Assembly: GCA_025201805.1 (NCBI GenBank)
Contig: MU619391.1
Span: 2,677-56,892, forward strand
Reading direction: 5' to 3'
Origin: Parasitella parasitica NRRL 2501
Taxonomy: Eukaryota; Fungi; Mucoromycota
DNA length: 54,216 bases
The notes beneath the pieces were generated by a model that did not search any database, was not told the DNA's origin, and saw nothing but the letters and a program-made list of their open reading frames with translations. Positions within the stretch are counted from its first letter, which is position 1; every line of letters starts with the position of its first letter. Position numbers and translations under genes: made by a program. This document shows positions 47,315 to 51,998 of the stretch, in pieces.

Positions 47315-48699
47315 GTCACTTCAAATAGCCAACATTACTTCTGTTGCTAATTGTGCTATACATTTCAGTATTAGAAACACACTCAACGTCAATTACGATG
47401 TCATTCCGCAAAAGGTGCTTTATGAAAGGTCTTGCATTAAATCTGAAATGGAAACATCACTTCATATTTACTGATATACTCATGCATACCTATAAAACTT
47501 CAAGTCTGTGACGAAAACCGACTTTTGCTTCACGCAGCAAAGTGTATAACCAACAATCTGCTACTGTGAAATATCTATCGGCTATATATGAAGTATTATA
47601 ATTCTGTAAATACAAGCATAAATATCCTTAAATATCAATATTAGGCTTACTTTTTTCACGACTTGAAGGCCTAATGTCTAATCTTTTTGGTCCATTCACG
47701 AACTTAGAGTCGTACCAAATGATTTCCCAGAACTTGTAGTTCCTGTCTGATGCATTTTTACCAAGAATGAAAAATCGACAGTTTCGAGTGAGGACTTATA
47801 AACAAAAGTTGATGGATTTACTTATTTTCTGAATTTGGTCTTAAAAACGTGGATTTTTCTTATGGTATACACGGTCTTTCCATATCAAAAAGTCGCATTT
47901 TAAGATTTTTGCTTGTCGTTTTAGTATTTTAAATGAGCAATTTTAACCGAGTAGTATTTAAGGACAGGACAGAAAAGGAGGATTAAGAGATGAAGGTGAA
48001 AGGGCTTGATGTACGATTAAGGAAATTAGTTACAATGGAATATTATTTGAATCAGCTTGGATATATAAGTTGAGACGTTTTAAGCGAAGAGAAGCCAGCC
48101 GCGAATACTGATATCAAAAAGGGAAAAAAGAAATACATGTTTTATTTTGTATTCACACATACACACATGTTGTATAAATATTTAAAGATAAGACTGAAAT
48201 GAAGGTGCTTTGGGTATACATGTTGAGAGAAAGTAGCTTATAAGCTAAGTCAGCCATAATAAATACGAATTGACGATAAAGTTGAAGAAAGAACTGGAAT
48301 GAAAACGTATATAAAAAAAGAGATATATATACATAATTCTCATTTATTAAAACTTCGAATGCAAGCAAGATAACCTTACTTTTGACTGAAAACAGCGCGA
48401 AGACAGGTTAAATCAGATTCAACGCAATTGCAATAATTTTTTGTTCGTTTTCATTTTCGTTATTGTAAAAAGGCTGCCACAGGGGACAGGGGAAGGGCTG
48501 CCACTGAGGACAGAAGATAAATTACAAAATTTTGAAATAGGAAAGAGGCAACATAGGCGATTATAAATTTTAAGAATCTAATGATGAAATTTATTGCCTA
48601 CTTCAGATAAAGGTTTCCTCACAAATGCAAAATATATATGATTTGAACAAGTAATAATAAATGTTTGTTCAATTAAATAAAAAAAAAAAATTTTTAGGA

Positions 48700-49974
48700 G
48701 CAGTAGGAGACATAGCATTGTCGTAGATATTTTCCGTTAGAAGAAGATTAGCAGTTATGTTATCTAACATACTTTTACTACGCTAGTACTTGCCAAGAAA
48801 ACGATTAGCTTTTTCCGTCATTCGAGCAAACGTATTGACAAAGGTTTCGAGAGAAACGGTACTATTGTCACTTTTTAAATCGAGTCAAGTGTTTGGATTA
48901 GCATCCAAAGAAGTACAAGCAGGGATATTAATCATCTTGACACGGGATATGAGAAAGATGTGTTTACATAACCCAATTTGATCGGGAAATGAGCAAGAGT
49001 CAAGATGATTGCTTTCACGACGAAGAGAATAAAATATATCAAAAGTGGTAAACGATTTGCAATAAAAAACCTGTATAAAAAAACATACATAAAATACACC
49101 ATAAGATATAACTAAAAGCAACATACGTTATTAACATCATCTTCGGAAACCATGTGGACAGCTTCATCAATATCAATACTATCGACAAAAAAAATTGACT
49201 GGTACCATAGTAAACACGCAGAACATCTTGTCTATAATCTTAACAACCAAACTATTCAAGTGTCTGTCGATTACATTTTGAACATCATGATAGTTATTCA
49301 GAAGAGCAGGAGGAAAAGTGTTGTAAATGGAATTGGTCTCAAGGTCATAAGTTCGTCTTCATTTAAACGAATCACTCCCTTGATTGACTTCCAATCCTTG
49401 TATTTCTCGACAGCATCTTCAATTCGTTGCTTGATCTCAGAGGAAAGACGAGATGCTTTTGCTAATTCTTCAGGATCTAGGGGGCCATGGTTGATATGCT
49501 TCCATCTGTAAACAACGTCAGCATTACCATTGAAGTATTATTATTTTTTTGAAAAAGGCTAGCAGTGCAGCCAATTTCATAGAAAGGGCAACCTTTTTTT
49601 TTTGCACCTTGGCCTACTCAGCAGCAGTATTCTCTACAGAAAATGATCAAAGTGCGTTTTTATTATTTAGATGTATACTTTATCACTTTTCTTATTGTGA
49701 GGAGAAAGAGCATGATCACAGCGATAATAATTTTAAACAACCCAAAATCGACCTTCACTTGCAAATTTTTGGTCATATTTAGCTTTGGAGATGTTCTTTT
49801 ATGATAGGTCCAGGTAGCATGCTTATTCAGTACGTCTTCCTTGTAAGATGCAAATGAAGTCTCAGATTCTAAGTTAACCGTTATTTTTACTACATATGTG
49901 TATTTAGATTCTTCATGAAGTCTATATTTCGTGTTTATGATGATAATATTATTCTTTACTGAGGAGGGTAGCAT
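48700..49974 (-). pseudogene. Disrupted MULE transposase: N-terminal zinc/DNA-binding region joined to a SWIM finger; DDE core apparently deleted
   Basis: In shifting minus-strand frames: KHATWT, YYRCDHA, GCTAS..., VVYRWKHINH...RLSSEIKQRIEDAVEKYKDWKSIKGVIRL, then KSFTT..FY...DSCSFPDQIGLCKHIFL (decayed CxC..CxH SWIM). Confidence 0.75.
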
Positions 49975-50293
49975 AAACTAAGTGCAAAAAGTGCAGCAGT
50001 AACACCAGGGACACGACTATAAAATTAAGGGCGTGGTTATTTGCACATGAAAATGTACGCTACTGAGAAAAAGTGGGTACTTGAAAGTGATTATATCAAT
50101 TGGGCCGAAGTCTAGTAGTATTTTTTCTTTCTTTCGGACCACCACAATGAAACTTTGTTGTACTTGTTATGTCAAAAGTCTGATAAAATAAATCTGCCAA
50201 AGATTTACACTTTTATTCATAATACATCTCTCGATGTATTATATACACATTCATTACACTAGAGTTCTATTGTCTAGCTGCATAATGTAAATC

Positions 50294-50873
50294 ATGACTA
50301 CCCATGATTTACTGTAAGACCCTGGGACTGATCTGAGATCCTGATGTGAGACCTTGCCATGTTATTGATATAACAGTACTAATCGAAATCTTTCGGTTAC
50401 GTTAACAGAGATTAACTGTGCTGACACCGCTGATACCATCGAATCATGGCTCCGAAGCCTTGATCTTGCTGAACCCTTTGAACACTTCAGGATCTTGAAA
50501 GATAAACCGTAGGTATTCAAAATCACGGAATTTCAATGTACTTATCGCTTTTGTCGTATACTGTTCTAGATATGCGTTTCTACATTTTACAACTAAGGAG
50601 AATGCACGCAGATTCTTCCAGAGATACGGAAATAAGAAGCTTGTTGAAGGTAGGAGCACGAGGGTATTGCCATCCGTTGATTGGAATGGAAGACCAATCT
50701 CATATGAAATCCCTTTAAACATACCAGTATCAAACCCACCAACAGTGTCAAACCTACCACCAGTATCAAGTCCACCACCAGTATCAAACCGACCATCAGT
50801 GTCAAACCCATCACCAGTATCAAACCTACCAGAAATCAGAGTCAAGGCCACCATGTTAAAGTCATCTTGCTAG
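50294..50873 (+). CDS. RRM-like RNA-binding protein with Pro-rich repeat carried inside the MULE; exons 50294-50313, 50377-50508, 50570-50873; 151 aa
   Basis: Two GT-AG introns of about 60 nt splice in frame to MTTHDLLTNRNLSVTLTEINCADTADTIESWLRSL...FEHFRILKDKPYAFLHFTTKENARRFFQRYG...; KPYAFLHF matches the RNP1 pattern. Confidence 0.68.
50724..50832 (+). repeat. 18-bp coding minisatellite, about six units of CCAGTATCAAACC(C/T)ACCA encoding PVSN(L/P)P
   Basis: PVSNPP-TVSNLP-PVSSPP-PVSNRP-SVSNPS-PVSNLP. Confidence 0.88.
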
Positions 50874-51998
50874 GAGCAGATATTGATGATCTATAAAGTA
50901 AAATTCACGAGCATGAGGCAACAATACACCGTTTACGAGCAAAAATTCAGGAAGGCGAAATCAAACAACGTAAATTAAATTACTGAGCCAAATACTTTCA
51001 CACTCATGTTCAAATAAATAAATATGTGTATGTTTATGTATGTAAATGTTTTGTGATTACTTTTGAAATGGATATAAAAAAACGTGTATTTCTTTTTCTT
51101 CTTTTTGACATCAGTATTCACGGCAGGCTTCTCTTCGCTCAATAACGTCTCAGCTTATTTACCTAAGCTGATTCAAATAATATTCCATTATAACTAATTT
51201 CCAAACTCGTACATCAAGTTCGTTCGCCTACATCATTTCGACACCTTCTTCATCTCTTTATCCTCCTTTTCCGTCCAGTCCTTAAATACTACTCGGTTGA
51301 AATTGCTCATTTAAAATACTAAAACGACAAGTAAAATCTTTAAATGCGACTTGTTGATATGGGAAGACCCATATCCTTCAAGAGCAAGGCATTACCAATA
51401 TCAAATTTGGCTTTGTTAGAAATGTGAGTGATAGATAGTTATTCCTGTACCTGTATAAACTCGCCGTGTTACTTTTATTGATATCCTCAACATTACCGAC
51501 AAAATTTTGTGTACTATTTCCGTTAACGACTTTATTTTGGCAGAATTATGAACGTGAAGCTTTATAAGCTTATGAGACAAGCACTAGATTAATCACAATG
51601 CATTATTTTTAAAAGTCGTGCTGAATATTTGGGGATAATGCTCAGGGCGCATGTACATTGAAAGCAATGTTGCGTTGCATAGAAAGTTACAATGTTGATT
51701 CAAAACGAGCCAATCTATCCTCTTGTTTTTTAAATACCAGTAACCTGTCTTCTGCCTCCTTTTGTCACATGAATAAAAAAGAAAAAACAATTGTCTAACA
51801 ACTATATCTTTTTCTTTTTCTTTTTCGAGTCTTAGACCTTTTCATTTTTTTTGTATAATAGATTATCAATAGATTTCATACGTACTCCAAAAAGAGAAGC
51901 AAGACGGTTGATATACTATTTCTTGTTATATTACATCAAACAAGTTTCTTTTTTTTTTTTTTTTTTTTCTCGAGGTACTTTAAATTCTAAAATTCATT

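Follow-up and report, generated by a model that had tools for sequence, protein, structure and literature searches.

Organization of the gene in the window

The window analyzed here, i.e. the whole 54,216-nucleotide (nt) stretch of Parasitella parasitica NRRL 2501 contig MU619391.1 (positions 2,677 to 56,892), contains a 3.5-kb element (47870-51371) bounded by long inverted repeats, the ends of which were read directly from the sequence. On the plus strand, this element carries a gene for a small protein with a putative domain of the RNA recognition motif (RRM) type, and the gene is interrupted by a solo long terminal repeat (LTR). An initial annotation of the same DNA had described the element as a Mutator-like element (MULE), in which a dead minus-strand transposase lies head to head with a spliced, three-exon accessory gene of 151 amino acids (aa). 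The features of the gene are as follows:

50147-50164, plus strand: true start of the gene (ATG, MKLCCT), severed by the LTR.
50165-50375, plus strand: solo LTR of 211 bp with TG...CA ends and a target-site duplication (TSD), GTACT, at 50160-50164 and 50376-50380.
50376-50508, plus strand: rest of the true exon 1 (TNRNLSVTLTEINCADTADTIESWLRSLDLAEPFEHFRILKDKP), putative beta1-alpha1-beta2 of the RRM-like domain; RNA contig 50347-50508.
50509-50569, plus strand: GT..AG intron, RNA joint 50508->50570; its position is kept in all copies of the gene.
50570-50873, plus strand: exon 2, with the RNP1-like YAFLHF, alpha2, beta4 and the PVSNxP linker; premature TAG at 50871-50873 after a frameshift.
50650-50727, plus strand: alternative in-frame GT..AG intron of 78 nt, which removes the putative beta4; RNA joint 50647->50726, cut +2.
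50723-50848, plus strand: 18-nt tandem repeat coding for the PVSNxP units, expanded relative to the orthologues.
50855-50986, plus strand: C-terminal coiled-coil relic, frameshifted, with the ancestral stop TGA at 50984-50986.

The 211-bp piece was identified as a solo LTR because it has TG...CA ends and GTACT on both sides, because 18 of the 31 full LTR copies from the loci we fetched show a perfect 5-bp TSD, and because eight other copies (of these 31) are preceded by the same internal sequence, which ends with a polypurine-like tract (GATTTAAAAAAG). The insertion is missing from all orthologous copies of the gene. What the initial annotation had taken for exon 1 (50294-50313) and intron 1 (50314-50376) belongs to this LTR, which contains the ATG (50294), the donor (50314) and most of the acceptor, while the first base of the duplicated target supplies the G of the acceptor AG. 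When the LTR is removed, an ATG at 50147 (MKLCCT) runs in frame into TNRNLSV..., and this codon, together with about 30 nt before it, aligns with the Cokeromyces, Helicostylum and "Phycomyces nitens" copies. The orthologous N-termini (MEICCTDRNLSV and MKPCCNNRNLTF) follow the pattern M-x-x-C-C-T/N-x-R-N-L, and the true start is the ATG at 50147, as in the orthologues.

A DNA search with the whole element detected at least 40 copies of the LTR in the P. parasitica genome, 95-99% identical and mostly solo with 5-bp TSDs (loci L002-L030), which points to a young family. The RNA contigs of this family reach a very high depth (275-659). The 1.5 kb of internal sequence beside a 3' LTR (L017, 1712-3211) gave no Pfam match, and the family may correspond to a non-autonomous LTR element.

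Transcription and decay of the window copy

The locus was found in one public run, which we take to be RNA because its contigs carry GT..AG joints; as contigs from a single run, these data do not reach rare forms or the transcription start. A contig beginning at 50347 runs unspliced from the LTR across 50376/50377 into the exon and then through the 50508->50570 joint, and the 50313->50377 joint is absent from all RNA contigs. Thus, while the three exons of the earlier model do sum to 456 nt (151 codons plus a stop, by simple arithmetic), only the junction at 50508/50570 holds, the corresponding intron (50509-50569) having counterparts in Cokeromyces, Rhizopus and Mucor flavus. The model was also incomplete, as RNA reveals a further intron that it had not predicted (50650-50727), for which a spliced form and an unspliced contig (50620-50755) are both present. 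The last RNA contig stops at 50967, where adapter sequence follows, which places the transcript end at or beyond this position. In the unspliced form, the frame is closed by a TGA at 50366-50368, and no in-frame ATG occurs thereafter before the domain. Since the transcripts contain LTR sequence and no initiation codon from which the domain could be translated, we infer that no functional protein is made.

Alignment with the Cokeromyces, M. flavus and P. nitens copies uncovers additional damage. A 16-nt deletion directly after CCACCAT (~50855) causes a frameshift giving the TAG at 50871, a GAA->TAA change creates a stop at 50894-50896, and the coiled coil has also undergone a 6-nt in-frame deletion. 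With the LTR insertion as a third disabling lesion, the window copy is a transcribed pseudogene, contrary to the earlier view that its RRM part is preserved. Other elements of that description were borne out: the KPYAFLHF motif is present in the exon translations, the PVSNxP repeats correspond to the 18-nt tandem repeat, and the shifted-frame coiled coil extending to 50986 belongs to an RRM, proline-linker and coiled-coil arrangement that lies in one frame in intact orthologues. Decay of the copy proceeded as follows: a solo LTR inserted 18 nt past the start codon at 50147, splitting exon 1, after which the 16-nt deletion and the nonsense mutation destroyed the coiled coil. The locus has remained transcribed, with the conserved intron still spliced and the second in-frame intron used alternatively.

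A Mucorales gene family

All sequence searches were conducted exon by exon or with database proteins. A word search with exon 2 retrieved Cokeromyces recurvatus BX663DRAFT_432901, and a search with the Cokeromyces protein retrieved Rhizopus delemar RO3G_11925, its unspliced Logan form and M. flavus MFLAVUS_002633. A profile search among 1.84 billion representatives yielded 16 matches at E<=0.001, 12 of which are family members or fragments thereof; the remaining matches are long proteins (1,805-4,074 aa) with several matched stretches, which we took as coiled-coil or low-complexity matches. Further named members were found in Helicostylum pulchrum (two), "Phycomyces nitens" and Rhizopus azygosporus, and at a second locus in each of Cokeromyces and M. 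flavus. Besides the window, there are ten homologous copies, distributed among Cokeromyces, M. flavus, Helicostylum, "P. nitens" and two Rhizopus species, and all family members with a named source belong to the Mucorales.

At the DNA level, and with the intron confirmed by RNA taken into account, the genes of Cokeromyces and R. delemar are intact; the public models of both omit the YGFLHF strand through use of a later acceptor. Intact members are about 170-180 aa long, with an RRM-like domain at the N-terminus followed by a Pro/Ser-rich linker and, at the C-terminus, by a coiled coil (...ILLEAxIDDLESKIHEHEAAIHxLRAEI...KEGQIKRRK..Y), all in one frame. Nine of the 11 copies, including the one in the window, are broken. 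In M. flavus copy 2, a stop separates the two domains, and stops, frameshifts or truncations affect M. flavus copy 1, P. nitens, R. azygosporus, the second Cokeromyces copy and the two copies of Helicostylum. The ratio of nonsynonymous to synonymous divergence (dN/dS, counts summed over segments), a comparison proposed in the initial annotation, is 0.08 between the two intact copies (Cokeromyces vs Rhizopus), with dS saturated, and 0.28 between the window and Cokeromyces. From the former value we infer strong purifying selection between intact copies. Altogether, sequence comparisons indicate that this conserved family of RRM-like, Pro-rich linker and coiled-coil proteins is real, undescribed and restricted to Mucorales.

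The surroundings of some copies deserve mention. At one M. flavus locus (L056, 9149-9862), an ORF (open reading frame) matching Helitron_like_N (E=1e-10) lies directly against the gene copy, the 5' end of which it truncates, with fragments of a Tc1-type helix-turn-helix (HTH) domain and of DDE_3 directly upstream. At the R. delemar locus, two adjoining ORFs (L055, 7566-8108, minus strand) lie head to head with the gene, 1.9 kb upstream of it and beyond the unit common with M. flavus; they look like a CENP-B/pogo-type HTH by eye, with a weak HTH_ABP1_N match (E=0.08). In Cokeromyces, a stretch of about 85 nt located upstream of a cysteine-desulfurase-like gene (L041, 129-215) matches around 40 places in the P. 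parasitica genome at 74-95% and represents a short dispersed repeat or a tRNA-like sequence.

Predicted fold of the protein

No RRM match was obtained with Pfam on the window exons. In P0005, a correctly spliced relative and the only database model containing both halves of the domain, a match to RRM_1 (E=0.037, 14.3 bits for a cut-off of 20.7) spans beta2-beta3-alpha2, and the sequence K-P-Y-[GA]-F-L-H-F fits RNP1 when read by eye. For the RNP1-alpha2 region, a profile search of PDB returned only yeast U1A (E=4.2), and the same type of search matched the coiled coil with the trimeric P22 gp26 needle (E=1.2e-5). The ESM Atlas model of P0005 (predicted local distance difference test, pLDDT, 0.54) has RRM_1 structures as its ten nearest structures out of ten (template-modelling score 0.57-0.63, 78-88 residues aligned), and 17 of its 30 feature neighbours in this atlas are RRM_1 clusters (~0.90). 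Profile and fold analyses used trimmed rows, as MAFFT applied to exon fragments had put the YGFLHF strand in the columns of the preceding strand. We consider it likely, from these models, that the domain adopts an RRM-like fold.

Inverted repeats and termini of the element

Outside the gene, the element shows the following features:

47868-47869: TA beside the left terminus, a candidate TSD with its partner TA at 51372-51373.
47870-48146, plus strand: left inverted repeat, whose outer 57 nt form a Tc1/mariner-like terminus (CACGGTCTTTCCATATCAAAAAGTCGC...); 83-92% to the right arm.
48170-48512: conserved non-coding block, 79% to Cokeromyces, with a duplicated GGCTGCCACAGRGGACAG motif at 48437-48512.
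48513-50146: orphan AT-rich stretch of 1.6 kb (the dead transposase of the initial annotation), including a 103-aa ORF on the minus strand (49663-49974); no homologue.
51076-51371, minus strand: right inverted repeat, with a Tc1/mariner-like terminus facing outward and TA next to it (51372-51373).

The terminal inverted repeats (TIRs), previously given as ~280 bp, are indeed about 277 nt long and 83-92% complementary (arms 47873-48146 vs 51076-51369), and weaker inverted homology extends past the left one to ~48234. The left end of the element reads TA followed by CACGGTCTTTCC and the right end, once reverse-complemented, TA followed by TGGGTCTTCCC; on the forward strand, ttatggtata precedes CAC... 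on the left and tatccttcaa follows ...CCA on the right, so that TA abuts each end. Over their outer 57 nt, both arms share 81% identity with a terminus present in Cokeromyces, M. flavus and P. nitens, where it starts with TA followed by CAGTCTTTTCATATC, and the TA/CAGTC junction is also found at these three loci. In Cokeromyces (L041), a distance of 320-480 nt separates this terminus from an ORF with YLPPYSPELNPIEQF, which matches the C-terminus of DDE_3 (PF13358, 36.7 bits for a cut-off of 28.6). Because of the TA flanks, which are weak evidence alone in AT-rich DNA, and of the homology of the termini to an end associated with a DDE_3 C-terminus, we regard the element as Tc1/mariner-like, and Tc1/mariner is the dominant superfamily of DNA transposons in Mucoromycota (PMC5751038). 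It is single-copy in its genome, as a DNA search of 32.8 Mb (450 contigs) returned only the locus itself and the LTR piece; the only near match to a further terminus copy, on contig C32, proved to be a chance match inside a coding region. An Rfam scan of the element gave nothing reaching threshold. The element is old, decayed and at best non-autonomous. Next to its left side, a 52-nt GT..AG intron is spliced in RNA contigs at 47592-47645, in the neighbouring upstream gene, and this flank is therefore an expressed host gene.

The conserved block at 48170-48512 is not coding, because all reading frames are equally similar. The GGCTGCCACAGRGGACAG motif that it contains sits just upstream of the gene in other copies, and the distance from the conserved block to the ATG is only about 290 nt in Helicostylum and about 75 nt in M. 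flavus copy 2. A block with one or two GGCTGCCACAGRGGACAG motifs occurs upstream of the gene in both lineages (window 48437-48512; L041 8490-8554; L065 7527-7603; L063 9857-9942) and is 87-89% identical between genera, which exceeds the identity of the coding sequence. It may represent a promoter or a protein-binding site.

These data bear on the proposal of a two-gene MULE, in which a decayed minus-strand transposase would stand head to head with an accessory RNA-binding gene that regulates transposition or counters RNA interference (RNAi) and whose RRM is preserved. MULEs with accessory ORFs have been described (mudrB, mutB and vanC; PMC6446971), and long TIRs are present here (277 nt, 83-92%), but such repeats are not specific to MULEs. 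MULEs are defined by a TSD of 8-11 bp (10 bp in MULE-Mucorales; PMC6446971), and when such a duplication was sought at the flanks of the element, only TA was found at both ends. A scan of the genome with PF10551 detected six MULE sites, all elsewhere, and neither this domain nor the other MULE/Transposase_mut DDE domain (PF00872) was found in the element. The 11 ORF pieces from 48153-50145 matched no Pfam family, with MULE, SWIM, DDE_3 and HTH domains all undetected. Comparison by tblastx with four own-genome MULE loci gave nothing convincing: the only match, 29 aa long (48981-49067, minus strand, E 0.2-0.8), involves two own-genome MULE loci, downstream of their MULE domains, and is SWIM-like by eye only. 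No transposase relic was detected either by tblastx against six own-genome Tc1-like loci, and a protein word search with the 103-aa ORF found nothing. Moreover, the stretch 48513-50146 shows no similarity to the rest of the genome or to any related locus examined, and the Cokeromyces copy, otherwise about 80% similar, has a different 1.45 kb in its place.

The dead transposase placed at 48150-49974 is thus left without support, and the window element appears to contain no recognizable transposase of any kind. As the termini are homologous to an end with a DDE_3 C-terminus, as the gene is broken in three places, and as the element is single-copy with no complete two-gene copy among the loci examined, the two-gene MULE is already largely refuted, and we regard it as very improbable.

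Another possibility is that a non-autonomous TIR element captured a host gene once, in this lineage only (Pack-type transduplication). Such an event would be in line with the non-autonomous, single-copy nature of the element and with a gene that fills the space between the TIRs. However, exon-wise protein searches and DNA searches recovered nothing in the genome besides the locus itself, and no parental copy, and the captured unit is a complete gene with its upstream (putative promoter) block and intron, rather than a fragment. Furthermore, the Cokeromyces copy has the same flanking inverted segment and upstream block, and the TIR-gene arrangement must therefore predate this lineage. A one-off capture seems improbable to us.

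Possible transposon cargo and horizontal transfer

No synteny was observed between any two copies of the gene, and a Tc1-like terminus lies 100-500 nt downstream of the stop codon in six of the 11 copies. The expectation that homologues would be flanked by transposons holds to this extent, since copies lie repeatedly next to transposon ends at non-syntenic sites, but MULE transposases are found at none of them. The unit shared by P. parasitica and Cokeromyces is 79-80% identical, intron and other non-coding sequence included, vs 68-74% for host coding genes. The R. delemar copy and M. flavus copy 2, which form a second gene lineage, share 89-90% identity over a 1.1-kb stretch that takes in the intron and 500 nt downstream, and their homology stops exactly at ...GCACTG followed by TA, while the copies of the two Rhizopus species are only 67% alike. 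In addition, Cokeromyces and M. flavus each contain two lineages of the gene, and the gene tree is incongruent with taxonomy. These comparisons support a level of similarity between copies too high for vertical descent, make the R. delemar/M. flavus unit a candidate case of horizontal transfer between families, and render a transposon-borne, horizontally moving gene family plausible. The R. delemar/M. flavus unit (L055 9994-11085 vs L063 9994-11083) also contains about five 20-nt subterminal direct repeats in non-coding DNA.

Inverted repeats were sought around the other copies and none was found, apart from one in Cokeromyces, where the gene is centred in a 1.07-kb inverted repeat (L041, 7195-8266 and 10620-11692) whose identity is 98-100% in the outer portion and 93% in the inner one. 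Each of these arms carries a Tc1-like DDE_3 C-terminus and a terminus pointing inward, and over its outer 240 nt each arm matches a repeat family that occurs at ten or more sites in the P. parasitica genome.

Alternatively, the gene could belong to an ordinary, fast-turnover host family of lineage-specific RRM proteins that happens to reside where repeats abound, and the Tc1-like ends and inverted repeats would be neighbouring junk, functionally unlinked to it. Several copies do lie between housekeeping genes and have no terminus in their vicinity, an upstream block, a start context and an intron are conserved as the gene's own, strong purifying selection seems to act between intact copies, and no locus links a transposase to the gene. 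On the other hand, a host family hardly accounts for the complete lack of synteny, for the disagreement between gene tree and taxonomy, for 90% identity between M. flavus and R. delemar running through non-coding DNA up to a CACTG/TA terminus, for the same gene-to-terminus junction in three genomes and the same terminus bounding the repeat of the window, or for the decay of nine copies out of 11. We therefore view this alternative as unlikely, though a serious one.

Our preferred interpretation, to which we attach a probability of roughly 0.6, is that the window contains a transcribed pseudogene of a small Mucorales-restricted family, located in an old Tc1/mariner-like element, and that this family behaves as transposon cargo or as a selfish gene. 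Such behaviour would be consistent with several lineages per genome at non-syntenic sites, with mostly decayed copies, with purifying selection in intact ones, with cross-genus similarity of non-coding DNA and with the Tc1-like terminus near six of the 11 copies.

Several observations weigh against it. In an AT-rich genome, flanking TA dinucleotides carry little weight, and the common terminus points toward the gene in Cokeromyces, M. flavus and P. nitens, vs outward in the window. An intact transposase and the gene inside one pair of TIRs were found in no copy examined; five copies (both Helicostylum copies, Cokeromyces copy 2 and two R. azygosporus loci) have no terminus or inverted repeat nearby, and R. 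delemar and M. flavus copy 2 have a Tc1-like terminus on one side only, the left terminus of the R. delemar unit having escaped detection within 10 kb. Horizontal transfer is proposed without a genome-wide baseline of Mucor vs Rhizopus divergence. As to the protein, the RRM assignment (PF00076 clan) falls under the Pfam gathering score, and an AlphaFold2 model of P0005 built on a shallow family alignment (pLDDT 39.4) places only two helices. Finally, the library type of the RNA run is a guess, and its contigs are blind to rare isoforms and to the transcription start.

Intact proteins of the family probably oligomerize via their coiled coil and bind single-stranded nucleic acid, to the benefit of the element. 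A more specific scenario, which we put forward as tentative and rather doubtful, is that the gene could be the dedicated cargo of an undescribed Mucorales lineage of Tc1/mariner type, that its product, similar in design to LINE-1 ORF1p, might act on nucleic acids of the element or on host RNAi, and that the unit may have been transferred horizontally even between such distant genera as Rhizopus and Mucor. An anti-silencing role of the protein is pure speculation. RNAi pathways of Mucorales are studied for drug resistance and genome defence. To our knowledge, accessory genes have hardly been described for Tc1/mariner elements or in early-diverging fungi, whereas Mutator, CACTA and some other DNA transposons are well known to carry them. 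If our interpretation is true, a small RRM and coiled-coil protein travelling with transposon ends in Mucorales would thus be a new type of transposon-encoded factor, and a handle on how DNA transposons cope with host RNA silencing. It is the family, rather than the dead copy of the window, that merits follow-up. For the window itself the lesson is a practical one: the three-exon model owes part of its structure to a solo LTR and is to that extent an artefact, this copy is dead, and annotation should not take over the MULE label.

Comparison with known systems

The LTR insertion has much in common with solo LTRs that disrupt genes or are exonized into them, being a 211-bp TG...CA repeat with a 5-bp duplication in the first exon, whose sequence is present in the transcript. 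It shows no unusual difference from such cases; the ATG, donor and acceptor of the spliced model simply come from the LTR and from the first base of the target duplication.

Regarding the element, TA flanks, CA(N)GTC... termini and the lack of a transposase of its own are shared with non-autonomous, long-TIR Tc1/mariner elements. It differs from them in containing a complete, spliced gene of a different kind, in being single-copy, and in that the terminus points toward the gene in three other genomes. A non-transposase gene located between long TIRs, lineage-restricted and of uncertain function, is also what characterizes the accessory ORFs of MULEs, such as mudrB of maize MuDR, mutB of Yarrowia Mutyl and vanC of Arabidopsis Hiun/VANDAL (PMC6446971). 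The window element differs from these in lacking a MULE transposase, a SWIM finger and an 8-11 bp TSD, its gene shows no similarity to mudrB, mutB or vanC, and no copy with both genes is known for this family.

The closest parallel in protein design is ORF1p of LINE-1, a coiled-coil trimer with an RRM and a C-terminal domain (CTD) that acts as a nucleic-acid chaperone (PMC5940361, PMC6428221), and thus likewise a small transposon-linked protein that combines an RRM-type domain with an oligomerizing coiled coil. The order of domains is reversed in the Mucorales family (RRM first, coiled coil last), the CTD is lacking, and no sequence similarity was detected. The two systems also differ in their mode of spread: no reverse transcriptase was found in any locus, and the intron is kept in every copy, which argues that the family spreads as DNA. 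Nevertheless, by analogy, the likeness to ORF1p suggests that intact members of the family could be multivalent binders of single-stranded nucleic acids.

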